64,000 nt of DNA from Klebsormidium nitens (lineage: Eukaryota; Plantae; Klebsormidiophyceae): positions 83,939 through 147,938 of the forward strand of contig DF237149.1 in assembly GCA_000708835.1 (NCBI GenBank), given 5' to 3'. Of the stretch, positions 9,414 through 30,017 are shown piece after piece; the stretch's first letter is position 1; each line of letters begins with the position of its first letter. The position numbers and the translations under genes are program-made. The notes below the pieces were generated by a model. It had not been told where the DNA came from and ran no database searches. It worked only from the letters and a program-made list of their open reading frames with translations.

Positions 9414-12400
9414 CTAGGAGATGGCGACCGCGTCTGCGTCCATCTGTACCATCGCGTCGCCCTCCGCCTTCTCCTTCTCAATCTCGTCGGCCTCGGGCAG
9501 CTTGCGGCTCTCGTCGTCTTCCTCCCACAGCACGAAGCACGCGAGCGTGCGCGGGTCTTGCTTCTCGACAGCCAGCACGTAGGGGCGCGGGCAGCCTGGG
9601 GGCGGAACGGCGGAACGGTCAGCGAACTCAGCGGAATAACAATCGGACCCGTTATTTCCAGAGCACAAAGCACGGGAGCATGCGCGGGTCTTGTTTTTCG
9701 ACAGCCAGCACGTAGGGGCGCGGGCAACCTGGGGGCGGAACAACGGAACAGGTGAGCGGAATGTCAATGGAAGATCAGCGGAACGAGGTTGGACGCATTT
9801 ATCGGACAGCAAGAAGCATGCGAGCGTGCGCGGGTCTCGTCTTCCACAGCCAGCACGTAGGGGCGCGGGCACCTTGGGGGCGGAACAGCGGAATAGAAGA
9901 GTGGAACACAGCGGAACAACAAACTGATCCGTGTTGTGAGCATGCGCAGGATTGAGATTCTTCGCAGGCAGCACGTAGGAGAAGTAATCATGCGAGCCAG
10001 AAACGACAAAGTGCGTCAGCGGAATATCAGCGGAAGGTCAGCGGAAGGAACGGTTCGGGTTCTTGCTGCAGCAATACGGGCGAAGGCAGAATTTCAATGG
10101 CCAGCGCGAGATCGCAAATAAGGTTTGACGGAAGGAGCGGAAAAGATAGACAGGTCCACGTAATTGCCCGCATCCAGCAAATAGTGGCCGCAACCCAATT
10201 CCGCTCTCACCTTGGATGGTCCGGATGAGCGGATCGGCGCCGGACTTGAGCAGAACGCGCACAATCCCCGACAGCTTGTTGCTGATTGCCACGTGGAGCG
10301 GCGTGAAGCCATACTGGTTGACCGCATTTACGTCGGCGCCCTTCTCGATCAGCAGCTTCACAGCATCCACGTTGCCGTTGCCCTGTGAAAGAGGCGACGT
10401 AAGCGCTTTAAAATTCAAATTGGACGGTTTAAGTTGGAAAGAAACACCTACGTCAGCGCCATTCTTACTGACATGCCTCACGGCATCCCCTTCTGGAGGA
10501 AATGCTAAAGTTTCAACACTTCCAACATCACTCGTCAGACCCTACCCTTCCACAGCGAAGTGCAACACGAATGCCAAAAAAAATGTGGACCCCCAATCCA
10601 TATGCAGACCAAATGCAGGTAACAGATTCTGAACACCTATCGCTCAGAGCAATCTCAAGACCCTAACCTACCTAGATGTGCTCTCCGGCGCCGCTCGTTC
10701 GACCATGCCTCCCGTGACAAAGCGCGACACGATTGCCACCCCATACACAGACCCTAAGCGTGATAAAAAAGCTCAAAGAAATCCAACCCAAACTCAAAAG
10801 CGAATACAAACGCAAGACCATACCCAAAACTAAATCTCAAACCCGGATTCGAACGCAAACCCAAACCCAAAGCCAGACCCATACCCAAACCCGGATCCGA
10901 ATGTAAACCCAGACCCAAACTCTGGGAACCAATTCAGATTCAACCCAAACTCTAGATTAACCCACTTGGATGTACTCTCCGGCGCTGCTCGTGAGACCCT
11001 CCCCTCCCGCAGCAAAGTGCAGCGCAGTGTCGCCCGTCTCGCTGCGGAAGTTGATGCGGGGCATCGACCGGATAGACGCCAGGACTGGCTTCCAGGCTTC
11101 GGCGCCCTTGTCTGAGTTCGCCGCATTTCGGAAGGCACTGCAACGAAAGCCGAATGAGAGGCAGTATTTAGAGTTTGCCGGACCTTTGCGGGATTCTGGG
11201 GTTCTGGAAACCTGAATTTTCTTGTTGGGGAACGAACCAGCTGGAAAGCAGGACCGATTTCAACGCCTCGGCGCCCTTGTCCGAATTGGCCGCATGGCGG
11301 AATGCGCTGCAAGAATGATGAACAAGAATGTGAGAACGTAAAAGTCAAGAGGTTATCAAACTTTCGCGAATTCTAGGGTATTGGGCGTTCTAGGGTTTTG
11401 GGGGCATAGCCTAATTGAGGCCGTCACAGGCTTCCGAGCCTCTCCGCCATCCCCAAATCCCCCGCGTTTTGCAAAAGGCGCTGCAAAGAGGAAAGGGCTG
11501 GGTCGGAGTCTGCCAAACTAGGGCGCAGCATGTAGACAATCTGTTTACTTTGTTATATTGAGTTTGGATGCGGGAACTATTTGAGTTGGGGGGCTCTAAC
11601 TTTTTGAGGGCACAGACCAAGCGGAACCCAACACACGCTTCCAATGCTCGGGGCCGTTTCCCGACTTGGCTGCATTGCAGAAAGCGCGTACAGCCGAAGA
11701 TCCGTCATCGCGGACCACCCCAGCTTCGGTGCTCGCGTCCAACTGCCGCGGCCGAGGGTTCACACTAAAGGCTTAGCGTCTCTTCAAAACCAAGGATGCC
11801 CTCCAATACAGTAGAATCCGACTTAGGGTTCACGGATAGAGAAACCGTTGGAATTCGTGCTTGCGGATAGTGTTCACGGATAGAGAAACCGGTGGAATTC
11901 GTGCTTGCGGATAGTGTTGACAAATTTCATGAATTTTGATAAGACTGAGACCGGAAGGCCAAAACAAAGAACTTTAATCTACAAGTTGGCCCACCTGAGC
12001 AGCGCCGAGTGCAAGAGCCAGCCGGCTACGACCTTATCATAAACCTGAGTCGGTTTGCCTAAAACTTCGGCCAGTATCAACATCGCCCACCTGAGCAGTA
12101 CAGATTGACACAAGCAAAAGTTCAAGCCCGTAGAACCACAAGTGTGTCAGGATGACCGCCCACCTGAGCAGCGCTGAGTGCGAGAGCCACCCAGAGATGG
12201 CCCATGGCGTTGACACGAAACTGCTTCGTTCTTAAGGATTGTAAAACCCCAAAAACGATGGTCCCAAAAATGCCCACCAGATTGACACAGTTAGAAGTTC
12301 TGCCCCTGAAAGGAGTATAGTGTCAGGATGACCGCCCACCTGAGCAGCGCTGAGGGCGAGAGCCAGCCGGAGATGGCCATAGTGTTGACACAAAACAAGA

Positions 12401-15400
12401 TTAAATCGGTTATCAAAACCTCGCTGTCAACAATGAGTGATACCGGCAGACTTCCGTGTCCTTCGAAAGATTTATAATTGAAGTAGTGTGATATCGACAG
12501 CCCACCTGAGCAGCGCTGAGGGCGAGAGCCAGCCGGAGATGGCCATGGCGTTGACAGAGAACCCGGTTTTCAAAACCTGGCTGTCAATAATGAGTGATAC
12601 CGGCAGACTTCCGTGTCCTTGAAAAGATTTATCTCTAACTAAAGTAGTGTCATCTTGACAGCCCACCTGAGCAGCGCCGAGTGCGAGAGCCAGCCGGAGA
12701 TGGCCATGGCGTGCGCGAGCGCCTTGACCTTGACACTAATTTGGACTTTGCTTTACCCCCGGTGTCAAAACCGGCCACCAGATTGGCACTGGCAGACGTT
12801 TGTGCCCTGAAAATGGATGTGGTGTCAAGATAACCGCCCACCTGAGCAGCGCCGAATGCGAGAGCCAGCCGGAGATGGCCATGGCGTGCGCGAGCGCCTT
12901 GACCTTGAGGCGCCAGCGTTCTTTCCCGGTGACGCTAGACTTGACCTCCGCGAGAGTTGGGGCGGAAGGAAGCTTGGTGGCTTCCGTAGTCGCTTCGTCC
13001 GCAAAGCGCACGATGTCCTCGATGAGCGTCATGGCACCTACGCCGATCTTGCCTGAACAACGAGAAGTTTGCCTTCCGTAAGATTGGCTGGAAAAGAGGT
13101 AGTGAAACCAAGAATGGTGGGAGTGAAATGGAGAAAACGGTACTCAATTTCGTCGCTTCGGTGGTCGCCTCGTCGGCAAAGCGCACAAATTCATCCACGT
13201 CCTGGATTCATTTCACGGCACCCACGCCACTCTTGCTAAACGCGAAAAACGTTGCGTTCTGTAAGATCTTCACAAGCTCGTAAGAAGGGATCGTCATAAA
13301 TCGGATGGAGGATAACTAACAATTGCTGTTCTAGCTTTCAAATGATTAAGGGCCGCCAAAGCAGGCTACCGAAAATAGGTGCGCTCTGCGTGGGCCCATA
13401 ATCGTGGCGCCGAGCTCCGGGACGCATTTGAGATCCGCTAGTAACCCCAACACCACCTTTCAAAGAAACGCACGGTGCTGTCATGAAGGTCGCCAATCGA
13501 GTACGACCGCAGACTAGACTCCTCATCAGTCTTGTGTCAAAAGAAGGTTGAAAGCACTTACCGTTGGAGAGGCGCGCTTTGCGCGGGCCCATGACTGTGG
13601 CGCCCAATTCCGTGAGCGTTTTGAGGTTCCGCTGGCAGACGGGGCTGTCGAACATGATGGAGTTCATGGCGGGCGCGGCGATGAACGGCTTCCTGCAGCG
13701 GAAAACGGAACAGCGGAACGCTTGTGAGCAGTGGTAAAATGGACAGTGCATGTTCGAAAAGGGCGCTCCCGTGCCCTTCTTTTGGAGGAAGCTTTCGAAA
13801 GCAGGTGAAGGATTCTGGTTCCGGTGGCAGCATTGATGACCAGACAGACGCTTGGCTAAGGAATGCGCTGACGACCTGGATTCAGCACCGCATCACCACT
13901 CGTCACTCTTGCCAAGGCCGGAACGAAGGAAGAAAGTGAAACGAGAGAGGGCCTCCACGATTGTCCAGACCGCATGCATTTGAAGCTGGCGCGAAGTATC
14001 CGTCATGCACAAATCCAGAGCAGTGAAAAGCGTACTGGAGAAGGAACCAGGAGCGGCATCTGTATTCTGACGGCCGTAAGGTTAATCTAGAAACGTTGAA
14101 GGCAAAATTATAGCCATGTTGGAGAAGCAACGAAAATGAGATCGGGACGTGTGGTTCCCGAGGCGCTCACTTCTTCCACTCCCACGCGGACACGACTGAC
14201 GTCAGCAGGTTGTCCCCGACGCCGTGGCAGATCTTGCCGAGCGTGTTACACGTCATCGGCGCAATGATGAGGATGTCGGCCCAGTCGCGCAGCCACAGAT
14301 GCCGAGCAATCACCTGCGGAGGAAGCGGTCCTTGGGTTTGGATTTGTAAGTTTCGAAATATTCTGAGTCTTAGGGTATCAGGCTATTCAGGGCCTACTTT
14401 GCGGGCTCAGTGACGCTCTGAGGGCCATGCTATGATAAAGTGGATCCGGGCTGTGGCTTACGGAAAGCTGTTCTTGAGAGAGTGTTCCGGACTGTCCGAA
14501 AGTTTCTCGAAAAGGATGAAGAAGTATCCAGGCAATCGTAAGGGGGAATAGCGTAGCTCGATTCAGAACAGACCTAAGACAAAGAAGGGAAGAAGAGAAT
14601 CTGGTATCTATGGACAGAAGATGTTAAGTCGATGATGCACAGCTTGAGAGGAAGCTTTTTGAGCAAGTGAATCACTGTGCTTCGAGGCTTTCACATGGAG
14701 CAAGATAACTGCAACCTACGGCAGCGATAACGAGAAGAGGAAGCAAGGTGCTTGGTAGGAACAGGGAGGAGATCGACCGAGCTACGTAAGGTAAAGGGTC
14801 CCGGGAACCACTTACCGGCATACCGAACGTGTACTCGAAGTTCCATTCATGGTGGTCTGCAAAAGAGAGATGATACTTCAGTTGTCGCACTCAATTTGAG
14901 CATCTTATTGATTGTTGGCCAGGTTTGAGGAATAAGCGTCCTCAGCGGCATTTTTAAAAAACCTTACGCGACCTACAAATGCAGTCAGTACGACCGAGAG
15001 ACTTAAAATTACTGCTGTCAAGTGACCGGGGCGATACGCACGTTGACAGTCTTCTGAGCTTCGACCATTCCTGCTCTCTCCTAATTTGGCCACGGTAGAT
15101 GTCCGAAAAGATAGGCAACTCCGAGCACTCCATTCAAATCTCAAGACACATCACTGGAATGACAGACCCCAGCGCAAAGCCGGGAAAGAGCAAAGCAAGC
15201 AAAGACGGCGAGGCCGAGCGTATTCTCACCGTAATAGATGTCGTCCTCTTTCAGTACCGATGTGAGGACCCGCATGCCATCCTGCAGAGAGGATTGTAGC
15301 CGATGTGAATATGCTGAAGCGAAGACGAACGCAATCAAGACGTGCTCAATCAGCAGGTCAACGTCGAAATAGGTTTAACGCCGATTGCACCAAAAGCCAG

Positions 15401-18400
15401 CAGTTACTTCCACCCATCACGCAATAGCCCAATGCGGGAAAGCAGAATTTGAGAGGTGAAAGATGAAAGGTGGCAACGAAGGCTTTCCCCGAACTCAAAC
15501 GTATAAAACGGTAACCAACCCTGGAACTGTATCCAAAAGATCGAAGATGTGGCCAGCTGATCTCTCACGGTTCAGGTATCTACCGAGAGCCCAATCCGAG
15601 GAAAGAAGTCAATAGGAAAAAGAAACGCAGAGTCCCTGTCCTCAAATGAGATCCCCTCAGAGCACTCACCCGGAAGAAGTGCCGCGAGTTCTCGGACGGC
15701 TCCAATTTCAAATCGAATTTGCCGGTAGCAGCAACTCATCCTTACCGACCAGATAACTAAAGCCCAGTATAATTGGATGAAAAGACAAAGACAACACCAC
15801 TCATACCAGAGAGATTCCCTCAGAGCACTCACCCGGAAGAAGTGCCGCGAATTCTCGGACGGCACCACTTTGACGTTGAACTTGCCGGTGGCCAGCAGTT
15901 CCTCCACGAGTGCCGGCAGCTTGTCGGCGGCCGATGACGCGGCGCTGCCGACTAGCACGTTCGCCTTGGGGCCGTCCCATGCGACGACATTCTTCGGCGG
16001 GGGGGGGCCGTCCCAGTGCCAGTGGGGCCCTTCGTGGTCGTAGTTCATCTGTTTGGGGGGGGAGCAAAAACGAAATTTCATTTAATAATAGGGTTTGAAG
16101 GACCCGCTGATGGCGTCGAACGTCGTCCATGAGTTTGATACGAAACACGCGTTCAAAAACTTTTCCGCGTTCAAAAACTCGTGACCTATTTTGAGGTAGA
16201 ACACCTTTCCAGGGGTATGCTTCTGGAAACCAGACGAGAAAGAGGGCCGTCCCATGTGACATTATTCATCGGCGGGGGGGGAGCCGTCCCAGTGCCCATC
16301 GTGGTCGTACTTCATCTGTGGGGGGTTGGCAAATGGGTTTAATGAAAAAACTTCATGGAAGGGAAAAGGAGGGGCGTCCCACGCGACGACAGTTCGGGGG
16401 GGGGGGGGGGCGTGCCAGTGCCAGTGGGGCCCCTCGTTATCGTGTTTTTGAAAACGTATAGCAAATGACTTCGGATATCTGCATTTCGGATATTGTTCGA
16501 CAGAAACGATGTCCTATCTGACGATATTACTCAGGGTAGGGGGGGCCCGCGTCCCAGTGCCAGTGGGGGCCCTCGTGGTCGTGGTTCATCTGTTATCAGA
16601 GGAAAGATCTGATTCAGTACCTGCATTGGACTGTGGGGAGGGGCAATATGCTTTCTAAAACAATGTGTCGTCCTCTTTCAGAACAAGCTTGGTGGGCGAT
16701 GGTCGTCCAAATGAGTGTGGTCCTCGCAGTCGCCTCTGTTGTTCTTACAGCAGAACAAGAGTCTTCCGAGTCGGAAGAATGTAAAGAGGAAACGTGCAAC
16801 TCGAAAACAAATGTAGAAGAAGAAAGCGCCGCTTTAGTGTTAAATCGGGGCCCTCTTAGTCGTCTGAGACGCTTTTCTTTGGGGGCAATTTTCCGGCGAA
16901 CTCGTTTGTGAATCAAGGAGAGGGCATACCAGTCGAGGGGCCCATTTTCGCGCGAGAAGGTCAAAGGCAGCGTTAGAGGGGGCCCTTCTTGAGTACCTCA
17001 AGAGATTGGGACGCATAACCGAGCTCACTAAAAAGCACCCAGTTCATTTCAACGCCCCCATGTGAGCTTTTCGCCCCAGCTGTTTAAGACTTTAAATAAC
17101 TACAACCCCTAAAAGTGCAATGACTTCGAAACCAGAGCACCTCCGCTTACCAAGCAACACCGCTTGTAGCCTTGGGAGGCCGCCATGTCGAGCGTGTACT
17201 CCGTAACGCAGCTGGCAATGCCCTTGTCGACCTCCTCTAGTTTCTGCGAAGTCTGTGCGCTGTAGTACATTAGGCACTTGGCCTCTGCTGACCCGTCCGG
17301 TTTGCAGATTGCCGTCGGCTTGCGAATGTACCTGTAGGCACAGTGAAAGGCATCAAGCTTTGGAATTCGGTTCGACTTGCCGATGCTCTTAAGGTGAAGG
17401 CAAGAGTTAGAACAGATTTAAAGATGGAAAGTGCGAAAGCGTTTGTGATAGCTGGTCGAAGAAGTTTGAAAGGCAATCACTTCAACTTGGTGGGACCTAA
17501 GGATAAGTAGAATCTACACACTTGTGGAGAAATCTACACTTCTGAAAGAGTATGGTGTGAGGCATTCTCCAAGGTGTCAAGCCTGGCCTGCACACGCTTT
17601 CTATTTGCAAACGTAGCGGCAGGAAGAATGCAGTTCGTGTACGAAAGCTTGAAGCTTTGTAGACCTTCCTAAACAAACCCCACTTGTGGAGGGAACCGCC
17701 TATGAGGTGGGGGATAACTTACGAGCTGTTTGCGAGGTCGTCCGGTATGAAGTTCTCCAGGATGTCGAAGGCGTCCAGCGTTACCTTGTCGATAGCGTAT
17801 AGCTCGCCCATAACCTGGCCACTGCCCTGGCCGGGTCTGCATAAGCAGAGAGACGATGACAAAGTCAGCACAGGAGAAGAGGGATCGAGAGACTTTGGTT
17901 GCCACAGTGCATTGCTGTTCGGCTGCAAAAAGGTGTTGCTGAATTGAGGTGAAGACGCTCTGCACGAAAGGGCAAAGAATCTGCTTTTTGATGACCTAAT
18001 GGCCCGTTCGTGCTGGTCAAACGGACAAGAGAACGACAACCGTTGAAGGAACCTCAGCTAGACCATTGAAAGGTCCAAAGACCCTTGGAAAAACCTTCAA
18101 AGAAAGACAGCTGTCACAAATGCCGCAACGGGATAAGATCAAAAGGTCTTCCTTTCACGAAAAAGCAGACCGAAATAGTGTAGCACAATGACCAAGTCTG
18201 AACACCAGCACTTCCGGGGAATTCGCCTAGCGCAGGTGTCGATTCTGCCCAAAAGGAACCAACAAAGGCAACAATTAGGGAGGGAAACCTACGCGTCCAG
18301 CAGCGTGCACGCACGGTGCAGCAGCCGGCACCCCGCGTTGGTGCAGCTGGGCAGCGTCGGCACGACAAGTGGCAGGCTCTCCTTGGTGACACGTGGCCCC

Positions 18401-21400
18401 ACGAAGTCGTGAAGCGCCTCCTCGAACTGTCCCCGGTTCGCGAACCCCTGCTTCAGCGTCCCGTATGTGAAAAACAAAAACGGCCGGTCGGGCTTCCCCG
18501 AGTAAACCCCGAGAGCCTCCGCCACAGCAACCGGGTCGCTCCCCTGTTCCCCGACCATATTTTCTTCGTCTTCTTCTTCCTCTTCATCGCTTGCGAGCCC
18601 GTCCACCGGCTGCACGTTAGCACCCGCCGCGGCTTTCTCGTCGTCGTCTTCCTCCTCGGGAATGTTTACGGGAACGTCGTACCGGCCCGGGCGCTCCATG
18701 ATGCTCGGCATCGGCTCCGGCGGCCGCGCGCGGACGGACTGCACCCGGGGGACTCCCCCGGGGCCTGCTCCGGAGGGATCCCCCTCGAGCCCGAGGATGG
18801 ACATCACTTTGGGCGACATGCTGTCGGTCTGGGTGAGGTTCCGGGATTGGGCCCGGGAAGGAGCCCGCGGAATTCCGAGATTCCGGCGGAGGGTGGATTG
18901 CCGGCGCTCGTAAGTGGATGCGCGGCGCTCGGCGCTGTTGGCCATCTTGGCCATGTTGTACGCGGTGAGGGCGGACTCCGCGGCCTCGCACACGAAGGCG
19001 CTGCAGGGGGCGGAACGGCGGAATCAGGGGGGACCGAAGGGCGGGAAGGGCGGACATAGACCGGCAGTGACACAACAGAACGGACACGCGAACATTGCTC
19101 GCATCTCAAAGGCCATGGGGTACGTGACAGGGAAAGCTTAAAAAGGACACGAGACCATGATGAAACTCTGTTCTGGGGGGGAAGTGGATATACAGAGACA
19201 CACACCGCCCGCTCGAAACCGAGTGTCCGAACTGGTCAAGCACAGGCAGCTCTTGCAAGCCACGGCTATCCAATTGAAAACACTGATAAGATCGTAAGAC
19301 GCGCGGAATAATCCGACAATGCAGAGACCAGACGTCAATTTCAGAAAGTCGTCCCATTCGCTTCTTTTCCAATCAAGCCCCAATCCAAACCGATCGAAGC
19401 TCCGGAGCTGAAGTTACATGACGAACACTTGCATCGACTACTCAAAGCTCATTCCCAACTTGGTACAGTACTCATTTGCAGCTTCCTAGCCCCGCTGAAC
19501 AAAACTAGTCAAACCAGAACCGGTTGTTACTAACCTGTTCAGTCGGCTGGGCGCGGGCGCTTGGTTGGCGTTGGAAGTTTTGCTCACGACGCGGATCATG
19601 CCCCGGCCACGTCCGATGGACAAGTCGCGCTTCTTGCACGCGGCAAACAGGCGGCCAACCGCGCATCGCCAGTAGCGCGCATAGGAGCGGGGCTGGACAC
19701 TTGCCAGGATAACCTCCTCCCTGGTTAGGGTTAAAAAACGGGTTTTGAATTAAATGATTTGTGATGAAGCTGAATGAGGTGGAGGATTGGGTTGGGGTGA
19801 GAAGTGGTGTGACCGAGGCTGGACATTCGCCAGGATCACTTTCTCCCCGGACCAAGTTCAAGTTTCCAATCGGGAAGAAAACTGTAGGAAAAGAGCCACT
19901 CAGCGTTGAGTGAAGCTACAGAGACTTGACAACCTACCGTGATCACTGACGGTTTTCCCGTTCATTTGAACTCCCTGTTTCTTGTTTGAGCCCTTGAACA
20001 TAGGGCGAGCATTGGTGAGAAAGTTCCGAAGAAAGAAAGAAGGTTCACAATAAAGACTGAACTCCCCGATCCTTCTTGTGGTTAGCTTAAGTTAGCGCAT
20101 TGAGAAGGTCTCATCACTACGTAATCTTGCAAGCTCTGCAATCCTGTAAAGAGTGCATGCAGCTCGGCGGCTTACAAGAAAAGCAACATCGAAATTGTAA
20201 ACACAAGCTCGCAAAGTCCAAGGTTATGAGGCCAAGAAGCGGGAAAGGAAGCTCACTTCTCCTTATCGACAGCTGCTACTAGCGCGTACTCTCCTCCCGA
20301 CGCGTGGCTTGTAATGTTGACCTTTGCGCCCAGAGCAGTGTCGATGTCGAAGTTGAGAATCACCGCTGTGTCTTGGTTCGCTACGGCGTCCTGCAGAAGC
20401 GGAGTGCGTCAGGATAACGTCAGCATTCTCCTACAAGTCAGTGAAGCCTTCCTCACAACGTTCTAGGTTGGAGTTCATCATCAACGTGGAGAACCTGAAG
20501 GGGCTTGAGTCAAAACGCCGTCCTTCAAGTGGTCCAGAAAAAGCTTGTGAGAGGACTCGCTCTGCAAGGTTCAATCAAAGCTTTCGCAAGCATTGACAGA
20601 GAAAATCAGATTTGCAATTGCGAGTACGTTGGCGTGGCAGGCTTTAGTCTCTGATCTATTTCTATCGTGATGGGGGCGCATTGTGAAACTTACCATCATA
20701 CAGCGCCAGAATGTCTCAGGCAGAATCTTGTTGTCGTCCATGTGGTAAATCTCCACCTGCAAGATTGTCAAAGAACGAAAAGTTTGTTCCAGTCTCACAG
20801 TGCAGTCTTCAGGCGGGTCAGAAGGGTTTGAGTCGTCCACAACCGTTTTCAGCAAGCGCAGCCACAAAGCCAGAAAGTCCAGTGTACATGTCGGATGGTG
20901 AAAAACGTTGTCTCCGATATGTGGTCATCAGAGGACCGGTTGCAAGCACTCTCGACGCTTGGTTCAGTGACTTCGGAGAAGAACTGCTTCAAAGAATTGA
21001 AACATAGAGTACGACCCAGTGGAGCCCAAAAGGCGCACAAGAGGTGATGTTGGCATGAACTGTGTCAAATGATAGTATTGATCCACACTGACGCGGATTT
21101 CAATGATCCGCTCCGCCTCGACTAGATTTCGAAACCACAGCGCATGTGTCTAAAGCGCAAGAACAACGACACGAGCTTGATAGCGCCAGCTTTGAAGCGG
21201 GGCGCATTCACCTTGACTGGCAGCTGCCTGGTCTGCACCACCTCGACCATGGTGTGAAAAGTGTCGGCGAGCGTCATGTTCCCGTCGGTCACGGCGCGCA
21301 GCGGCAGCTGGGCCGTGTGGAAGATATCGTCCACGCTCGTCTTCTTGCCGATCGCCGAAAGAGCATACGCTATGGCCGTCACGTTGCCGCACGCGATGGG

Positions 21401-24400
21401 GGCGTGCAGGGAGCGCTCGTCGACCTGGCACGTTGGAAGCAGAAAGCTTTTAAAGTCATCTCGTCACAATTCGAACTTAGCCCTGAACAAAGGCCTCTAG
21501 CATGAAACACCTTTACCATTTCAAGTTCAAGCTTTAATCACTCCTACACAAGACTCTCTTGTACTTGAATTTAATCCCAAACGAGCTCAACGCTTCTGGC
21601 CTCTGTCGCCTCAACCTCCCACTGACTGCCAAGCAAATGACGCATGAGCTGATTAGCATGATTCCTTTGCGAAAGGGCTTACATCTTGGGATCGTCATTC
21701 GTCTTGGCTGACAAGAAAAGCTCAAGACAAGTGTTAAGGCCACTACCTAAACGACCGTCTGCACAGCCTTCGGACCACAGGTAACGATGTCCAGCGACGA
21801 CCTTTCGGTGCAGGCAAAAACAAGCAGACCTGCAGAGCAACCATGAGCAGAAGCGAAAGCTCACCCCAGCGATCCCCTTGTGAATGCCTGGCGGGTTCCA
21901 AACCGCCTCCTGGGGCCACGGGTTAGTGTACGGGTTATCCTTGTGGGTTATCCGGATGCACCCCCGCGACCGCTTAGAGGTAGAGTCCTTGTCCTGCGGC
22001 AGCGAGGGATATGACGTCAGCGAGGGATATGACGTCAGGCCTTGGGGTGCGCGTCGACCGGGAATCTACTTAACACCTGTGTTGCCTTTGTCGTACCGCC
22101 AAGTAGGAGGTACGGTACGGTTCAGGCCGAAATACGGCTTTAGAATGTACCTCTCTGACCACGTGGATCTACTGGACCATTCAGTTGGCTCAAAGCTCGG
22201 GGATTCTCTGCAGCGCTTCTTTATCTGCGAATTGTTGGCAATCTGACTCATCACTTTCTATGGTCCCTGCAGTTTGCCAGGTTTGTGAATTTCCGGCCTT
22301 TGGTTCAGAAATCTGTGTTCAATGGACCTAGAAGAGGTAGAACTGGAGCCAGAGTCGAAAGCGTTAGGAGAAAGAACCATTGCCAGCGTCCAAGAAAGCG
22401 CAGTTTGTATGAGGTCTTTGAACGCGAATCGCGGACCCGGCTTCACGAACAGCCTTGGTCGAGACTCCGTACATCGCTTCGCTTCCGTGTATCACAACAG
22501 GAACGATGAGGCGCGAGAAAGACAAGTCTTATACGAGAAAAATGAGACTGAAACCAGGGATAAAGAGGGTGAAGAAAGTGACTACACCTGCATCGCTCGG
22601 AACATGCGGTTCGGCGTGCACCGCCAGTATCGCAGGTACTTCTTGGGGTTGACGTCAGCAATGACGAGGTGGCCGTCCGTGTCCCATCCTCCCAGGAGCG
22701 CGAAGTGCCCACCGCCGATCGCGACTCCCTCCTGGATTCCGTGCGCGATGTTGACGTTGAAGTTGAGGAGGTACATTTCGACGTCCTTGGAGGACGCCGC
22801 CCGGCGCAGGCTGACCTCAGCAACCTGTCAGCACGAGAAAGGTCTGACGTCAGANNNNNNNNNNNNNNNNNNNNNNNNNNNNNNNNNNNNNNNNNNNNNN
22901 NNNNNNNNNNNNNNNNNNNNNNNNNNNNNNNNNNNNNNNNNNNNNNNNNNNNNNNNNNNNNNNNNNNNNNNNNNNNNNNNNNNNNNNNNNNNNNNNNNNN
23001 NNNNNNNNNNNNNNNNNNNNNNNNNNNNNNNNNNNNNNNNNNNNNNNNNNNNNNNNNNNNNNNNNNNNTGAGGAGGGAATGACGTCAGCTTCATGCAGTG
23101 ATAAGAAGTCGTCATCAAAGCCGAGGTCGAAAGCAGAAGTGTTGGTTAAGCATAGAAGGAATGAAGTAGGATTGGAGGGAAGGGGGACGAACAAGGAAAG
23201 CAAAGAAGAAACACCTGAGCCCACCTGTTCTGCGAAGTCCTGTTCGCTCAGGCGTCCCTCGTCGAAGAAGAAGAGCTCCACTCGGAAGGGTAGGTTCCGC
23301 CCCTCGACGTATCTACAGGCCACTTGGAACGTGTCTGCCAACGTCAGCCCCGCGTCGATGATCATCTGGGCGGGAAGGTCCGCATAGTGGAACACGTCCT
23401 CTACAGTTGTTGGGACGCTCAGAGCGGCAATTGCAAACGCGATAGCTGCATAACAGGTAGAGGATTCGAATGGGTCAGACTAATTCAGCAGAAAAAAGCA
23501 GGATTGTTGCGATGTCACGGCAGCAGCCTGATTGAGCTTTCCTAAACAGTCGTGGAAATGGCGTACCCTGGCAGGATTTGTTTTTTTTGGGAAAGAGACG
23601 AGCCTAGAGTTATTCGACCAAAAGCACGCCTCTCCGGTAAGTGGCACGCTCACGTAAGCCGTCAGAACGAGAGGACGGGCAAGTCACCCCAGATCTTGAA
23701 GGGCGTCTGCGAATCTAGACGGAAAGTCTTCCCGCTTTCTTGCTGCGTCATTCCATTTGCTTGGCGAGCCTGACCGGCCACAACGGCACCAAACATCAAT
23801 CAGGACCCACGCCCACGTTCGTTTCACCGGTCACTTTTGGTTGGTAAAGCCTTGTCGGCACTCGGGAATGGAGAAAATGACTTCCTCTTTCTGGAACCTT
23901 TCTCCGGCTATCACCCCTTCCCTCGATGGTTATTGCCATGAGCAGCTTCCAGCCGTCGGTCGACGGGGCGATAGCCAAGGCGGGGTCGAATTTTGGCGAC
24001 GGAAGGCCATGCTTCTGAGCCTCGGGCTCTGTCAGTTTGGGACACTTGAAGGAAGCTGTGACCCAAAGCGGCGGAAGCGTCTCACCTGTGATGTTACAGC
24101 AATTGAGCGGCTGCTGGAACTCGTACAAGTGGACCATGTCGAGCGCTTGCCGCCGCCCGCTGTGCTCGAACGCCTGCCCCGACAACGTGGTTCCGCCACG
24201 TGTGATGAACGACGCCTGCGGAAGGTAGGTTTGTACCATCTGATATCTATGAGCAGTCGACGGCTCCTAGGAATTGATTGGTGCAAGGAGGGTGTGTACC
24301 AGATGGCAGTCAACGAGCAAATCGACGGCTCCTAGGAGACGAGTGGTAACAGTAGGATTGCGACAGCGGCAGTCACTGTGCAGTCGTTGCGACAGACGGC

Positions 24401-27400
24401 AGTCACTGTGCAATCCACGGCATTTAAGAGATGGTGAAACGGTCAAACCTGAACTCGACTCCAAAGCCTGCTACCATTCGCCAAGCCCCTCTTGAGAATG
24501 ATCCTTGCTCAAAGACCGCTTACCAACACAGGCACAACTGACGTGTTACATTACGTCAATCTGCTAACGAAAGATGGACTTCACAGACCTTTCTGAAAGG
24601 GGCTTGGCCATCCAGCGCAACCGAACAATCTGCAGAAGTATTCCTTCAAAGCTGTCAGAGATGTCCAGTCCTCAAGTAAGGCATGGACTACGGTTCCTCA
24701 AACCTTTGCCTGAATGGTTTTGCGAACTTGCCTGCGACTTGCCCTCCGCCCAACTGGCCTGTCCCCCGCTTGGCAACGCCACCGGCAGAGGCCCAGGGAC
24801 GTCGGCTCCCTCCGTGCTTCGACGGGAGGACTGGGTGATGAGCTGGCTGAAGGGGTCTCCATCGGAAGATTGAGGGGGGGTGAGGGGGCCGCTGTCCAAA
24901 GGTCGGAGTGAGGGGGAGACGGTGGGGACGGGAGAGCCGTCGAGGGAGCGACGGGAGGAAAGCGAAGAGGGGGTCTGCAAGTAAGGAGGGGTTGAGTCTT
25001 CAGCCGTCCAATCAATGACAGGAGAAACTTCAGAGGGTCCTGAATCACACAAATTCTGCTTTTGCTTTCTTGCATTCAACGCAACGCCTGGCGGAGTCTT
25101 TGAGAAACCGACGAATCGTGCGATAAGGCTCCGTGCTCGTCACTAACAAGGTCCAAACGCGGTCTGCTGCAAGCAATGGCACCACGGCTGATGTGGGGAC
25201 TGTCTCAGGCACTGAACACCCCAGGAGCTTCAGAAAAGTGCAAACTATTAATTGCACGCTGCGGTGCTTGCCAAACCAGCACGTGGCAACCGCACGGTTG
25301 ACGCCCACTATTCGCACGCCTAAACATTTTGGACAGACTCCTGTCAGGCAGCCACGTGGCATTCTCAGGAGGAGAGAGTGGCACACCGCATTGTAGGTCA
25401 TGTACTTGTCGGCGTTGGGGGTGAAGCGGTACAGCGAGTCCGTGTTTTTGAACGACTGGTTCTTGTTCACGTGCTGGATAAGCTGCAACAGGACTCAGAA
25501 ACTTAGAACAGCGTTCGCTGAACCACTTGTACAAACCATCATTTGAAACATTATCTGTAATCTGTAAGCCCCATAAGGTTGAGATTATGGGGCGCAGTCT
25601 CTTTGCGCTGCTGCGACACCAAGCAAAGAAAAGCAAGCCAAAACAGAAAGTCTGGCTCATCATTTATCAACACGGGAGGACTTCAGGGGCTTCTCGGAGT
25701 AACAAAGTGTGCCAACTTCTCTCCCATGATCAACATTTCCGAAAATGGATCAAACCCAAATATCCTTGAAAAACAAACTTCAACATGGAGTTGCCACCAG
25801 TGTAGGTGCAGCCCCAACCTGCGCCCTCCTGGACGTTCCCAGCTCATGAAAAACCAAACACTCTTCTTTGTCAGGTCTGAAATTACCAGCCTGTTCTCCG
25901 ATTACTTCCTCTGGCAAGAATTCGCCCCCAGTCACAAAGCCGCCAGCCACATGGTATCAGCACTGTCAGCGATTGAAAGGAACCCTTAACATACATGGAA
26001 AAACCCTAGATACCCATAGGTCTTTATGAGCCAAATGCGCCATCTCAAGCTCGCTAGCTCTTGTTGTCCCGACAACATATTCTTTCGCCTTGATCTAAGA
26101 ACCATGCCCAAACCTTGATTCTATCCTGGAAGGCGTTAAGCTAAGCAGATCCCCCAGCTTTGAAGAGCCCCTTTCAAACCTGACCGCCACCTCTGTCAAC
26201 ACCGCCAGTATGGCGAACTAATGCCTTTTCCCTACAGCACACGACCTCAACGACCTAAGACTTGCAACGCCGCTTCTTCAACAAGGTTAAGCTAAACTCT
26301 CACCTCCTCCTGCATTAGCGCGTTCCCAATCGCAACTGCCCACTCCTCCGACGTTGCCAGCCCCGTTGTAAGAAGCACCTTGACTGCAGCCACCCCCTCA
26401 AAGCAGTCCTTGTACTTGCGCAGGTTCACCGTGCGATCCTTGATCACAAGGCCCTGTCTTAGGGCGCTAACCACGTTCGTAAGGTCTTCTTCTTCAAGCA
26501 CCATCTCCCTGGGTGACGACTCGTTTATTGAGGCTTGGGGCCTGGAAAACGATAGAACCTGGGGCTTTCATTCTGAGGCTTTCATTTTGGGGCCTTGGTG
26601 GAAAACACGACTTTGGTGTGGGGCTTGAATTAGATTAGTAAGAGGTTGGCATGAGCAAGAGTTATGCAGATCCCACGTTGGTCCCATAGGTTTGAGGACA
26701 CCGCAGCTGCAAAGTGCAATCCAAATTTTGGCCCCTCATAGAGCTGAAGCTTTGACTGATGATGTAGAACGTTGTCAAAGACTTGCAGAGTTTGAATCAA
26801 CTTCTGAGCATCCCAATCGGGCTCTCAGAGGTACAGCTAAGCACCACCACCACGAATGGATGAACAAGCTGCACTCCCCACAAAGCATGGCTGTTACTGT
26901 TGTCCGCTGGTCTGCGCTAAAAGAAGGAACCTACGAGCAAAAGTGCCTGGAAAGGGGTCGCAACCAGTCAGTTAGGAAAGGGACTGATACTATAAGGATG
27001 CCTTGTCGCACATGTTCGAACTGGAGAGTCTGGGGGCACTACTTGGATCACACAAGCGGCCAAAATTTTATGGAATTTGGCAACGACTTAAACCTGAAGA
27101 GTGGAGGAGACAAACGCTTGCAGAAATAGAATGTGACTCAGTTGTGCGGACGCAAGCGAAAGTATGATTCCTTACAGCAAAGAGGAGGAGAACGTGTACA
27201 GCGCACTCGTAGAGTTCTTAAAGCCGGGGGAGCCTGGGGAGCTGTCAACCGCCTGTTTGATGACTCCTGCCTGCAGGGGGCACAAGACAAAGTGGTTGGT
27301 TCCGAGAGTCTCCTGCAAGCTAGCGAGCTTTGCGCTTGCAGCCGGCATTGGGTGCAAATGACTCTATTGACCGGATCCCTGGAGCTCTTTCGCTGACTGA

Positions 27401-29019
27401 GGTGCAAGCCAAGCCCAGGATTGGGCAACACTGTCAGAAGTAAAGCGTTAGAGACCCGACACAAAGATCAAGACTTGAGGTTCTGTGACACAATCCTTGT
27501 GCTGGCCAAAGGTGTGCGAACAAACTTAAGGTTTTATCATGCATTTGCCTTGGCTGGTACAATGCTTCTGCCTTGAAAAATGACATAGGAGTGCCCCGGA
27601 ACTCCCTCAGACCTTGTCATGCATTAGCGGTGGCGCCTGGTTTATGTCTCAGCTTTGCAGAGTTGCGGATGAAAGTTGTCCACTTCGAAAACTGATATGA
27701 AGCTCATAAAGCTTCGTGCATTTGAGCAACAACACAACACTTTTGCAAGTCTTGCTGCAAACCAGCAAATATTCTGAAGCAATCATTGGGAGAGGGGAAC
27801 AATTGCTTACAAGAAGCAGCGAGGATTCTGTAACTCCAACAGATTTGTATGTATACACGAGAGTAAGGGGTACATATGGAGCAATGCTGTCAGTGATATC
27901 ACAAGTTCCTTGCCCAGTTTGCTGATGCTGCGCTACGAAAGATTGATCAAGCTGAGTGTACTCAGTCGAACTCATTTTGAGCTCAACAACTGTCCTCAGC
28001 ACTGACTGGCTCCTCTGCCAGGACGCTGACAGCTTGAACACTCTCAAGGGGGAGGCTCAGAAAGAAAGATGCACAAAGTTCGAGCTTGCTCCAGAGAAAC
28101 GTTCAGCTGAGTGGTCTCATCATGGTGCGGCATTGCGTCGGGCTCCCAAAAAGTCCGCGAGTTGCATTTCAAACGAATGTTTGTTGAAATAAGGGCCAAA
28201 CTTTCATTGGCTTAACTTTCACATAGGCCCAGAGTCGTTGATTGTAAGTTTTGTGTAAAGCAAAGCCATCTTGCCATATAGCTGCAGTATATATGACATT
28301 TGAGTGGGCAAAACGGAAGCGCCAGGTGCCTCACTCTGGAAGCAGTTTTTTCACCTTGGCTCCATGCTTCCTTGCGCTTTCACTTTATCCGCCCAAACTT
28401 CAGCCATAAATTCAGGCAAGTTAGGGATTTGCCCCTCCCCTCCATCAAAGAGCTGTGCTGTGAATGTTCAAGCAGCCACTTGCTGGTCATCTGACTAACA
28501 GTCGGACAAATAGACGTTGGCACAATCATCGGCACAATAAGCACCACCTCTTGTTGAAGAAGATGCAGCGCTTACACAAAGCACGGTGCAATCTAAAAGC
28601 AGAGTGGATTCAAACCAAAGGTTTCAAAACAACACCGAGACACCCTATAGCCACGATACACGATCTTCAAGGCAAATGTCAAGGAAATATGAGAAGGTAC
28701 TCACATCAAGCATCTTGCCACCCCAGCTCACCACATAAACCAGAACGTTTTTGCATCAACTCTTGGTAAACAGAGGCTTTTGGAAAAACCATAGAACAAG
28801 CGGAGTGACGAAACTCACCGCAAGCAACTGCTGCCCCAATTCCACCGCGGACACATCATGTGGCGCCAGCCCCTCATCTAAAAAGAACTCCACCGCCTCT
28901 GTTCCCTGAAATGTCTGCTTATACATCCGGAACCCCACCCGGCGATCCTTCTTTGGCACGCCCTGAAAGAGCTTCTCGGCAATTGCCGAGAGCTCGCCGG
29001 AGCCCAAACGGCGATGCAT
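9414..29019 (-). CDS. Multidomain fusion: DEP-DEP-PCS-like-pseudoPCS-GGACT-like-HFCD flavoprotein-ankyrin (about 1,410 aa; about 1,491 aa with the cassette exon)
   Basis: Exons: 29019-28819, 27270-27176, 26508-26304, 25482-25387, (24974-24732), 24215-24086, 23445-23225, 22824-22588, 21993-21865, 21424-21212, 20756-20694, 20390-20257, 19720-19535, 19000-18293, 17836-17723, 17331-17151, 16048-15833, 15281-15230, 14856-14816, 14313-14171, 13692-13562, 13052-12842, 11137-10966, 10382-10211, 9595-9414. The 24 core exons have GT-AG junctions with matching phases and total 4,233 nt (divisible by 3), with no internal stop found. Confidence 0.85.
9600..9990 (-). repeat. Tandem degenerate copies of the acceptor and 5' end of the last fusion-gene exon
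   Basis: cagccagcacgtaggggcgcgggca recurs near 9570 (true exon), 9703 and 9848, with a decayed copy near 9965. Period is about 130-145 bp. Confidence 0.85.
10780..10962 (+). repeat. Degenerate hexamer (AACCCR-like) microsatellite in an intron of the fusion gene
   Basis: aacccaaactc, aaacccggattc, aaacccaaacccaaag, atacccaaacccgg and similar units; source of the GFGF artefact ORF. Confidence 0.75.
11985..12845 (-). repeat. Tandem array (about 165-180 bp period) of the 3' end and donor site of exon 13052-12842
   Basis: gcccacctgagcagcgc.gag.gcgagagccagccggagatggcca recurs near 12836 (true donor), 12662, 12500, 12335 and 12159, with partial copies near 12086 and 11988. Confidence 0.9.
12842..16048 (-). 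other. HFCD flavoprotein domain (PPC decarboxylase/HAL3/EpiD family)
   Basis: NVLVGSAASSAADKL; PVIARHLWLRDWADILIIAPMTCNTLGKICHGVGDNLLTSVVSAW; KPFIAAPAMNSIMF; LGATVMGPRKARLSNGKIGVGAM. Confidence 0.9.
17151..18490 (-). other. Gamma-glutamylamine cyclotransferase / AIG2-like domain
   Basis: FLFFTYGTLKQGFANR...LPLVVP...LLDA|PGQGSGQVMGELYAIDKVTLDAFDILE...|YIRK matches the GGACT/AIG2 pattern (YGTLK.G..N, V.GE.Y.VD...L..LD..E, Y.R). Confidence 0.85.
19535..21424 (-). other. Phytochelatin-synthase-like domain 2, catalytically degenerate
   Basis: Collinear with domain 1: LHAPIACGNVTAIAYALSAIG, ILNFDID, SGGEYALVAA (His to Glu), VILASVQPRSYARYWRC (Asp to Ser), RGRGMIRV. Confidence 0.8.
21865..24215 (-). 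other. Phytochelatin-synthase-like (papain-fold) domain 1 with intact catalytic triad
   Basis: EFQQPLNCCNITAIAFAIAAL (oxyanion Gln and Cys), GGGHFALLGG (His), LVIADVNPKKY..YW (Asp) and the C-terminal DKDSTSKRSRG motif. Confidence 0.85.
25387..29019 (-). other. Two tandem DEP domains (N-terminus of the fusion gene)
   Basis: KKDRRVGFRMYKQTFQGTEAVEFFL...AVELGQQLLA|AGVIKQAV...LYTF and IKDRTVNLRKYKDCFEGVAAVKVLL...AVAIGNALMQEE|LIQHVNKNQSFKNTDSLYRF both fit the DEP pattern (IKDR..Y..CF.G.EAV.WL...AV.IG..L...G.I.HV....F......YRF). Confidence 0.85.
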
Positions 29020-30017
29020 TGTTCCTGTTCAGAATTAATTCCTGACGTCCAGTCACTGAATGTTGTAAAAGTCCGTTGCAGAAAATGTACGGCAAGTTCT
29101 GGGACTGGGGACTGGTGACTCTTTCCAAGGTAGGAGCTTGGCAAAGCAACTGGTGCTAGTGGTGGGCGATGAATTTCTCACAAAGGCTCTCTAGCAGCTG
29201 TTGAGTTTTGAGATATTTGGAGGTATCACAGCGGCTCATGGAGCGTAGACACCAATCAAAGAACTTTGCGTGGAGAATTTAAGGAAGTCAGGCACTATCC
29301 TCTGCCTCTCAATGGCAATCCAGATGTTTGCAGATCACTGAAAGCAGTTGCAATTGATTGCCTTCCTTTACTTCTGCTTTTTGCTACCACCGGACAACGG
29401 TCTCTCTCTATGAAAGTTTATGAAGACACCGTAGCTTCGAAAGGTGTCACAGAGATCTAGCACACAATGAAGACGAAAGTAACCTTGAATCCGAGAGCTC
29501 TGCGGCTCAGCACAAAATTCAACGAAGGAACCAGCTTATGGGGTCCTTGCCCCGAGCTCGCACTTTGGTGTTCAGTCATTAGGGGGCGCAGAGCCGTACA
29601 GGGGGGAAGATTCAAACTCAAGAATCCGACGGAGCCTGAGGTGAAGACTCGAGAGTTGTTTCTGAAAGTTTTCCTTCGAGTTCAATCAATGGTGTCCTTG
29701 CATCACCGATTTACCGGGTCCCGGTATACCTAGGTATACGGGAGGTATACCGTATCTTCGCAGCGTGCCTCGGAAGGAAAACCCTAGAGGCTAGGCCGGT
29801 ATTCGGTAAAAGGCTGTAAGGATTTCAGCAACTGAGCAGTTTATGGTGTCACACAGTGTCACAGCGCCGGGCGCCGGGCACGCAGAGCGCACACTTGCAT
29901 TGAGGGAAGGCTGCACAGTTACTTACCGGTAGGTATTGCACTAGTGCAGCAGGCAGGAGTCTCCGGCGCCCGCGCGGCGCGGAGCTTATGCGCACCACTG
30001 CACTGGCCAGTCAAGCG

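Follow-up and report, generated by a model that had tools for sequence, protein, structure and literature searches.

A candidate cysteine decarboxylase module without the reducing cysteine, expressed within a large fusion gene of the alga Klebsormidium nitens

[quoted passage not shown] The thioaldehyde loses carbon dioxide and an enethiol, or thioenol, is formed (PMC9604783, PMC11350588). Reduction of the enethiol is a property of the phosphopantothenoylcysteine decarboxylases (PPCDCs) only, and for this Cys175 is needed (PMC9604783). In yeast PPCDC the active site is shared, i.e., the His comes from a Hal3/Vhs3 protomer, Cys and the PXMN motif from the neighbouring Cab3 (PMC9604783). In CoaBC the HFCD domain is fused to the maker of its own substrate (PMC7794376). 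The settings in which HFCD domains are known are the synthesis of coenzyme A (CoA) and the maturation of lanthipeptide-type antibiotics. Here we analyse an HFCD domain of Klebsormidium nitens which retains the oxidising residues and carries an Asn at the place of the reducing Cys. It is encoded on the minus strand of a 64,000-nucleotide stretch of contig DF237149.1 (assembly GCA_000708835.1, positions 83,939 to 147,938), henceforth the window; all coordinates are window positions.

A preliminary description of this DNA, made from the letters alone, had claimed an HFCD domain with the catalytic His and Asn but without the Cys of the ACG motif. This is confirmed by phmmer searches against PDB chains and by the spliced sequence. 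The three strings on which the claim was based are real. ARHLWLRDWAD is located in exon 14313-14171, PAMNSIMF in exon 13692-13562, and RLSNGKIGVGAM in the spliced mRNA. The last one is present only after joining 13562 to 13052, a joint shown by four RNA-type runs, as RLSNG/KIGVGAM is interrupted by the intron 13561-13053. The span originally assigned to the domain, 13040-14313, does lie inside it, yet it comprises only the C-terminal two thirds; the N-terminal part is encoded in three further exons.

The residue assignments are as follows. The His of ARH corresponds to His90 of AtHAL3a (1e20/1mvl, E 3e-13; phmmer with the single exon against all PDB chains) and the Asn of PAMN to Asn142. The strings ARHLWLRDWAD and PAMNSIMF cover AtHAL3a residues 89-98 and 139-146; the final Trp of PXMNXXMW is Phe in K. 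nitens. The Asn of LSNG is positioned opposite Cys175 of 1e20 and Ser175 of the C175S mutant 1mvl (E 2e-7 and 5e-7). The redox-active Cys of the PPCDC clamp, LACGD.G.GAM, is absent from the K. nitens domain, and Asn is found instead. The PF02441 Flavoprotein-type HFCD fold is evident from exon-wise matches to 1e20, 1mvl and 1qzu, and a local hidden Markov model of canonical PPCDCs matches residues 2-183 of 193 with 178 bits. The N-terminal flavin-binding part aligns with residues 19-62 of human PPCDC (1qzu). With one exon of 48 aa AtHAL3a scores 52 bits, the peptide decarboxylases EpiD/MrsD 21-24 bits.

The gene is split by GT..AG introns. RNA runs which contain 18-26% of the words of the window, a share that approximates the exon fraction, were found in seven studies. 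Contigs of four RNA runs from four studies were mapped on 12600-18500. Nine identical splice joints are present in the four runs, all GT..AG and all on the minus strand. They lead from three exons of a gamma-glutamylamine cyclotransferase (GGACT)/AIG2-like domain to six HFCD exons and onward from 12842 to an exon ending at 11137. In the spliced product a single open frame leads from GGACT through a linker of some 30 residues and HFCD into the first part of the ankyrin repeats; a 5.7-kb contig of run X7 reaches 3.3 kb upstream of 18500. The HFCD domain is an expressed internal module of a large fusion with the order GGACT-HFCD-ankyrin. Modules resembling phytochelatin synthase (PCS), placed by homology to relatives, are located upstream on the same strand and are putatively part of the same transcript. 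The parts connected by RNA, with the ankyrin repeats that follow them, are:

15833..16048, minus strand: HFCD exon 1, with a short linker, MNYDHEGPHWHWDGPPPP, plus the strand-loop-helix for flavin binding at the N-terminus, VLVGSAASSAADKLP (RNA joints 17151 to 16048 and 15833 to 15281; splice sites; 1qzu residues 19-62).
15230..15281, minus strand: HFCD exon 2, DGMRVLTSVLKEDDIYY (RNA joints; continuous frame).
14816..14856, minus strand: HFCD exon 3, DHHEWNFEYTFGMP, with the clade signature DEW.F.Y (RNA joints; hmmalign against relatives).
14171..14313, minus strand: HFCD exon 4, the catalytic His (ARHLWLRDWAD) and the FMN-phosphate loop APMTCNTLGK instead of APLSANTLxK (phmmer; RNA joints).
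13562..13692, minus strand: HFCD exon 5, PAMNSIMF and the first half of the clamp ending RKARLSN-G, with Asn at the Cys175 place (phmmer against 1e20/1mvl residues 133-176; RNA joints).
12842..13052, minus strand: HFCD exon 6, with KIGVGAM as the second clamp half, together with the C-terminal helix and the linker leading to ankyrin (RNA joint 13562 to 13052; contigs continue from 12842 to the exon ending 11137).
17151..18500, minus strand: GGACT/AIG2-like domain with the YGTL motif and the Glu of GEL; exons 18500-18293 (starting further upstream), 17836-17723 and 17331-17151 (RNA joints; open frame into HFCD exon 1; tblastn to the GGACT parts of L007, P0012 and P0018).
10211..11137, minus strand: ankyrin repeats after HFCD; exons about 11137-10966 and 10382-10211 (11137 from an RNA loose end; Pfam Ank E 4e-14; homology to relatives; lower boundaries by splice-site logic only).

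The picture widens when relatives are considered. The 48-residue exon carrying the His was searched by phmmer against 1.84 billion cluster representatives. Most matches are ordinary PPCDCs with the clamp L[AVMI]CG(D/E).G.GAM; a separate set of multi-domain proteins has L[ST][NS]G..G[IV]G.M. In all, 24 domains possess L[ST][NS]G for LACGD, and every one has Asn or Ser at the Cys175 place (Ser in P0010). The 54 canonical proteins from the motif search have Cys at this clamp position. The Cys-less domains are always joined to ankyrin repeats (Ank), usually also to GGACT, PCS-like and Cys-free glutaredoxin-like (Grx-like) domains, and the orders are permuted. By Pfam the architectures of relatives are Grx-like-HFCD-Ank; HFCD-Ank-GGACT; GGACT-HFCD-Ank-PCS-like; HFCD-Ank-GGACT-PCS; and PCS followed by HFCD-Ank-GGACT, with matches to PF02441 at E 1e-15 to 1e-29.

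Aligned against the canonical profile by hmmalign the clade displays changes of its own, SSA[AS]DK for SVAAxK, DEW.F.Y, AP.TCN for APLSANT, G[IV]GD and PA[MC]N. Invariant throughout, in bacteria and eukaryotes, are His90, the Asn of PXMN, the Met of PXMNXXM, the glycines of the clamp and the flavin-binding motifs. K. nitens fits the signature SSA[AS]DK, DEW.F.Y, H-L-x-L-x-x-WAD, AP.[TS]CN, PA[MC]N..M, L[ST][NS]G..G.G.M plus ankyrin, and it shares the association with GGACT, joined by RNA contigs, and PCS, placed on the same strand by homology. One deviation is AA instead of CG ahead of SSAADK: exon 1 (15960-16010, minus strand) reads GSAASSAADK, whereas all other clade members have xCGSSA[AS]DK and canonical PPCDCs TGSVAA.

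In the phylogenetic tree all Cys-less domains are on one side of a long branch (SH-aLRT 98 with 90 rows, 99/99 with 54 rows). K. nitens adjoins P0010, and the clade is far from the plant-type PPCDCs P0066, P0055 and P0076; the nearest Atlas cluster of the plant-type canonical kind is mostly Streptophyta. Instead of grouping with the PPCDCs of its host lineage the K. nitens domain falls with alphaproteobacterial proteins. A scan of one genome per prokaryotic species yielded 14 loci at 54-63% identity, all from marine Alphaproteobacteria (Ruegeria, Roseovarius, Roseicyclus, Nisaea and metagenome-assembled genomes of Rhodospirillaceae). Below these, identity falls to 37% or less, which is ordinary CoaBC. 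The 14 are single open reading frames of 1190-1295 aa with the order cNMP_binding-PCS-Grx-like-HFCD-Ank-GGACT, and LSNG and PACN are present in each of them. There is also an operon form in a bacterial-looking context, in which there is an overlap between the GGACT gene and the stop of the Grx-HFCD-Ank gene. The contig of P0012 has a GT..AG intron between the Grx-like and HFCD parts and therefore represents a second eukaryote in the clade. All K. nitens modules are homologous to bacterial ones by tblastn, in permuted order. That the three enzyme types accompany each other in both bacteria and eukaryotes, with their order permuted, is much stronger evidence of functional coupling than a single fusion would be.

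The preliminary description, which considered an enethiol/thioaldehyde product of this kind unusual for a eukaryote, needs a correction: fungal Hal3/Vhs3 are a partial precedent for a Cys-less eukaryotic HFCD protein, and the clade is found in bacteria and in at least one other eukaryote. Public names of clade members are generic, e.g., 'glutaredoxin-related protein/3-polyprenyl-4-hydroxybenzoate decarboxylase'. Full-text searches returned no description of the clade, of the PCS/GGACT/HFCD combination or of natural gamma-Glu-Cys decarboxylation, and for algal cysteamine synthesis nothing on this family; gamma-glutamyl-cysteamine appeared in the literature searched only in papers on cystinosis and cystic fibrosis. 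A word-index protein search with residues 1-560 of P0010 returned only P0010 itself. In the ESM Atlas a search by features gave generic ankyrin clusters only and a search by shape generic PPCDC/CoaBC clusters only, with no taxa for the clade.

Purifying selection could be assessed with L088, a genomic contig of a related Klebsormidium which aligns in the exons only, at 78-90% nucleotide identity. Over 205 codons there are 77 synonymous-only and 13 non-synonymous codon differences; in the two catalytic exons the numbers are 28 and 2, and LSN is unchanged. The HFCD domain is selectively maintained and under strong purifying selection. The replacement of the Cys is neither chance nor decay because it is fixed in the whole clade and preserved under purifying selection in a related Klebsormidium.

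A structure was modelled with AlphaFold for residues 183-395 of P0006, the closest full-length relative (50% identical; alignment of 50 rows). The model is a confident one, with a pLDDT of 94.1, and places LSNG at the turn of an ordered beta-hairpin which resembles the substrate clamp of PPCDCs. Its best match in the PDB is 1MVN, i.e., AtHAL3a C175S with the enethiol (TM 0.76/0.88, 34% identity). The LanD enzymes, at 19-30% identity, rank 11th or lower by fold. To judge from sequence and model, the domain is a descendant of the PPCDC branch and not of the LanD branch, and a likeness to EpiD would be one of chemistry only.

That the domain is not a PPCDC of the CoA pathway, as had been proposed, is well supported by the separate clade (99/99), the internal position in a fusion and the low scores of a relative with the CoaBC/CoaC equivalog models. 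The clade member P0164 attains 122.4 where 219.7 is required, and 89.1 where the cut-off is 261.4 (NCBIfam TIGR00521 / TIGR02113, which are bacterial models). Very probably, then, the domain is not the CoA enzyme.

What might it do? Oxidative decarboxylation is the chemistry to expect of a domain with His and PXMN but no Cys (PMC9604783; title of 1MVN). The best explanation, which we regard as evenly balanced between right and wrong, is an FMN-dependent Cys decarboxylase module of a multi-enzyme protein and not a housekeeping PPCDC. The individual parts of this proposal differ in strength. The first half-reaction is probably active. For a substrate of the gamma-Glu-Cys type, suggested by the company of the domain, we see equal chances either way. 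That the product is left unreduced is a tentative proposition, and we would lean slightly against it. All considered, EpiD-like oxidative decarboxylation, most plausibly of gamma-Glu-Cys, appears to be the best reading and a reasonable one.

GGACT enzymes act on gamma-glutamyl-amines as a substrate class, and a peptidase of the PCS type makes gamma-Glu-Cys from glutathione. The following cascade can be envisaged. The PCS-like, papain-type domain would remove Gly from glutathione or a related gamma-Glu-Cys-X thiol. The gamma-Glu-Cys formed in this way, being an N-acyl-cysteine whose carboxylate is free, would be formally analogous to phosphopantothenoylcysteine. An HFCD trimer would oxidise the thiol with FMN, using the His of one protomer and PAMN of its neighbour, and the thioaldehyde would decay to carbon dioxide and the enethiol. 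With the amide of Asn at the place of the protonating and reducing Cys the product would most likely remain at the level of enethiol/thioaldehyde (loss of 46 Da), as in EpiD and AtHAL3a C175S, leaving the reduced flavin to be re-oxidised by a different acceptor. Finally, the decarboxylated gamma-glutamyl-amine may be cleaved by GGACT to 5-oxoproline and a C2 fragment at the level of an aminothiol.

Several points weigh against this proposal. Substrate and product are deduced from the domain composition alone, and the specificity assumed for the GGACT family is carried over from human GGACT. The modelled fold is that of a relative of 50% identity and not of the K. nitens domain itself. K. nitens is alone in having Ala at a near-invariant Gly of the N-terminal flavin loop. 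The HFCD domain has other Cys residues as well (TCN, PVCQ, KIC; PACN in the bacterial proteins), and one of these, or else glutathione or another external thiol, might complete the reduction; two of them, in TCN and PVCQ, had been named in the preliminary description as possible substitutes for Cys175. The Cys of TCN is conserved in the whole clade and PACN in the bacterial-type subclade. K. nitens shares the Cys of PVCQ only with its sister P0010, in place of a Thr which hardly varies otherwise; KIC is present in K. nitens, P0006 and P0044.

A redox-neutral decarboxylase is an alternative, though an unlikely one. It would carry out the PPCDC-type reaction (loss of 44 Da), finished by a clade-specific Cys or an external thiol, and the product gamma-Glu-cysteamine would be split by GGACT into 5-oxoproline and cysteamine. 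Such a stable amine would suit GGACT, and an external electron acceptor would be unnecessary. The invariant Cys of AP.TCN, the Cys at the Thr position in K. nitens and P0010, and PACN next to the catalytic Asn in the bacterial subclade are all in its favour. However, TCN is the only extra Cys common to all three subclades, it resides in the FMN-phosphate-binding loop, and it occurs also in 2 of the 54 canonical enzymes which keep the clamp Cys (P0032, P0067), so that it is not a specific replacement. Further, the Cys175 place itself is occupied by a conserved Asn (Ser in P0010), which is unable to donate a proton.

Considerably less probable is a non-catalytic role, in which the domain would bind flavin or trimerise as a scaffold, or would sense the redox state, so as to bring together or control the PCS-like and GGACT domains. 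Members of the HFCD family exist obligately as trimers or dodecamers (PMC7794376), Hal3 demonstrates that regulatory roles are possible for such domains (PMC9604783), and the exchange of Gly for Ala in the flavin loop of K. nitens would be compatible with it. Yet neither His90 nor the Asn and Met of PXMNXXM vary from bacteria to eukaryotes, and the same is true of the flavin-binding motifs and the glycines of the clamp; the two catalytic exons differ from L088 by 28 synonymous-only and 2 non-synonymous codons, and for a scaffold the catalytic dyad would be needless.

We consider it highly improbable that the domain is a partner like Hal3/Vhs3, which would form mixed trimers with a canonical, Cys-bearing PPCDC and donate its His to a CoA-pathway site, or act as a moonlighting regulator. 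The precedent is yeast PPCDC, where Cab3 supplies the Cys across the protomer interface (PMC9604783). But Hal3/Vhs3 lack PXMNXXMW while K. nitens keeps PAMN, the domain is part of a large fusion whose other parts are unrelated to CoA, and the clade also exists in bacteria, where CoaBC is a separate canonical protein (CoaBC-type matches at 37% identity or less, although in other genomes). In addition, Ppz phosphatases are described as restricted to fungi (PMC6695811). Least credible of all is that this is simply the alga's own PPCDC for making CoA, with some other solution for the reduction step. PPCDCs are indeed its best matches in the PDB, in sequence as in fold, yet the domain belongs to a separate clade with a long stem far from plant-type PPCDCs, its fusion partners are enzymes of the glutathione type, and a clade member scores far below the CoaBC/CoaC equivalog cut-offs.

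A pseudogene or decaying copy was also considered, prompted by degenerate exon fragments in the introns, and was rejected on the grounds of splicing and expression in four studies and strong purifying selection. One set of such fragments is:

11989..12908, no strand assigned: intronic array in which the 3' end of HFCD exon 6 and its donor site recur as seven decayed tandem copies, period 161-176 nt (repeat families D1/D2; RNA contigs).

Only the copy at 12842 of this array is spliced in the RNA contigs. Decayed copies of exon ends with splice sites are present in the introns flanking HFCD exons at 11989-12908, 13149-13195, about 13350-13450, 15648-15729 and 16244-16600. Among the intronic copies are three to four of the 5' end of exon 1 with its acceptor and, as single copies, pieces of HFCD exons 1, 5 and 6. 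One copy of each duplicated exon end is used in the RNA contigs. The fragment at about 13350-13450, reading MGPRRAHLFSVACFGG*, was examined as an alternative exon which might supply a Cys and was discarded; it is a decayed duplicate of exon 5 and its donor with a stop at the end. It is in no RNA contig of the four runs, although contigs can miss rare isoforms.

Upstream of GGACT the same strand carries further modules:

19489..24266, minus strand: two PCS-like (phytochelatin-synthase-family) modules (tblastn to the PCS parts of L007, P0010, P0012 and P0018 at 24134-19516; weak Pfam Phytochelatin match with one exon piece).
26295..29028, minus strand: two DEP domains, the presumed N-terminus, putatively of the same transcript (Pfam DEP E 5e-9 and 4e-9 with exon pieces).

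A run of N (assembly gap) at about 22853-23070 is inside the first PCS-like module, and that part of the protein is unreadable from the window. In the second module (20256-20408 and 19489-19749, minus strand) there seems, by eye, to be a Glu for the catalytic His of the first (GGEYALV versus GGGHFALL), and no Asp in the motif which follows.

The relatives show further peculiarities. The Grx-like domain ahead of HFCD in many of them (P0164 1-130, P0018 540-680, L007 protein 580-720, L087 3-464) has no Cys of the CxxC/CGFS kind, e.g., DPNSY or DPMSY, and is followed by a conserved linker (I/L)(F/Y)GYPKG; the domain is absent in K. nitens. Binding of glutathione, and not redox activity, may be the function of the Cys-free Grx-like domain. 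P0001 (739 aa) and P0003 (385 aa) contain four and two tandem plant-like HAL3 domains per chain, respectively, and the catalytic element that is lost varies among the domains: His, the Asn of PXMN or the clamp Cys. This recalls the division of labour between yeast Hal3 and Cab3, here confined to one chain.

In 10 of the 14 bacterial loci a neighbouring gene encodes a protein of about 1100 residues with SAM, adenylate/guanylate cyclase, AAA_16/STAND and TPR domains (L007 8831-12160, minus strand; L018 594-3914, plus strand; and 8 further loci). The operon of P0164 is preceded by a GAF-cyclase gene (L002-L004 841-2259). An N-terminal domain for binding of cyclic nucleotide monophosphates (cNMP) is recognised in 8 of the 14 bacterial fusions (best E 1.4e-7), and DEP domains are at the corresponding end in the alga. 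The domain content suggests an enzyme which is switched on by a signal, in bacteria by a cyclic nucleotide.

Carried further, the Cys-less HFCD domain could be the core of an undescribed, signal-gated enzyme that destroys glutathione in marine Alphaproteobacteria and some algae or protists, a view to which we assign a low probability. Activation would be by cyclic nucleotide in bacteria, via the cNMP domain and the adjacent STAND-type nucleotide cyclase, and through DEP in the alga. PCS-like cleavage, oxidative decarboxylation to the reactive enethiol/thioaldehyde and GGACT cleavage would follow in this order. If so, glutathione would be irreversibly converted to glycine, carbon dioxide, 5-oxoproline and a reactive C2 sulfur fragment, and the protein might be an effector of stress, defence or cell death, or a new source of compounds of the cysteamine/taurine type. 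A PADLOC search gave weak matches at the level of ankyrin only and no tie of the protein to a known defence system.

Next to CoA synthesis and lanthipeptide-type maturation the Cys-less clade forms a third natural branch of HFCD enzymes, in which the reducing Cys has been given up, the oxidising machinery kept, and both a glutathione-cleaving peptidase domain and a gamma-glutamylamine cyclotransferase are coupled to it. If the proposed cascade is true, it would constitute a new route of glutathione catabolism and perhaps a new C2 sulfur source at the level of cysteamine or thioaldehyde in algae and bacteria of the roseobacter group. The natural exchange of Cys for Asn is, moreover, a ready probe of how oxidation and reduction are coupled in PPCDCs.

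How does the domain compare with known systems? The PPCDC/CoaC proteins (AtHAL3a, human PPCDC, the N-domain of Dfp/CoaBC) have the same fold and are closest by sequence and structure (1MVN/1E20). Retained are His90, the flavin motifs, a clamp hairpin and, from PAMNxxM, both Asn and Met; as in CoaBC, HFCD has been joined to enzymes which presumably serve one pathway with it. In contrast to PPCDCs, Cys175 is Asn, the signature SSAADK, DEW.F.Y, TCN, G[IV]GD and L[ST][NS]G is present, and the partners are PCS-like, GGACT and ankyrin, not CoaB. The LanD enzymes (EpiD, MrsD, CypD, TvaF, SpaF) share the HFCD fold, the His and the Asn of PXMN, have no reducing Cys, and the chemistry expected is the same, i.e., oxidative decarboxylation of a C-terminal or N-acyl Cys to an enethiol (PMC11350588). 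Yet they are more distant in sequence and structure. The context in K. nitens is a multi-domain enzyme gene, with neither a precursor of a ribosomally synthesised and modified peptide nor a biosynthetic cluster; the loss of the Cys is convergent, and the presumed substrate is a small thiol, that of LanD a peptide.

Hal3/Vhs3 are eukaryotic HFCD-family proteins which likewise keep the His and have lost the catalytic Cys (PMC9604783). They are also devoid of PXMNXXMW, form mixed trimers with Cab3, possess acidic tails and inhibit the fungal Ppz1, whereas K. nitens keeps PAMN. As both His and PAMN are preserved, a homotrimer can therefore build complete sites for the first step. Finally, AtHAL3a C175S (1MVN) is a PPCDC without a thiol at position 175 which, according to the title of the entry, was crystallised with pantothenoylaminoethenethiol. 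This is a laboratory mutant that holds its intermediate. In the natural clade a conserved Asn occupies the position, and enzymes acting downstream could carry the product off. By descent the Cys-less HFCD domain is an offshoot of the PPCDCs, possibly inside a new pathway.

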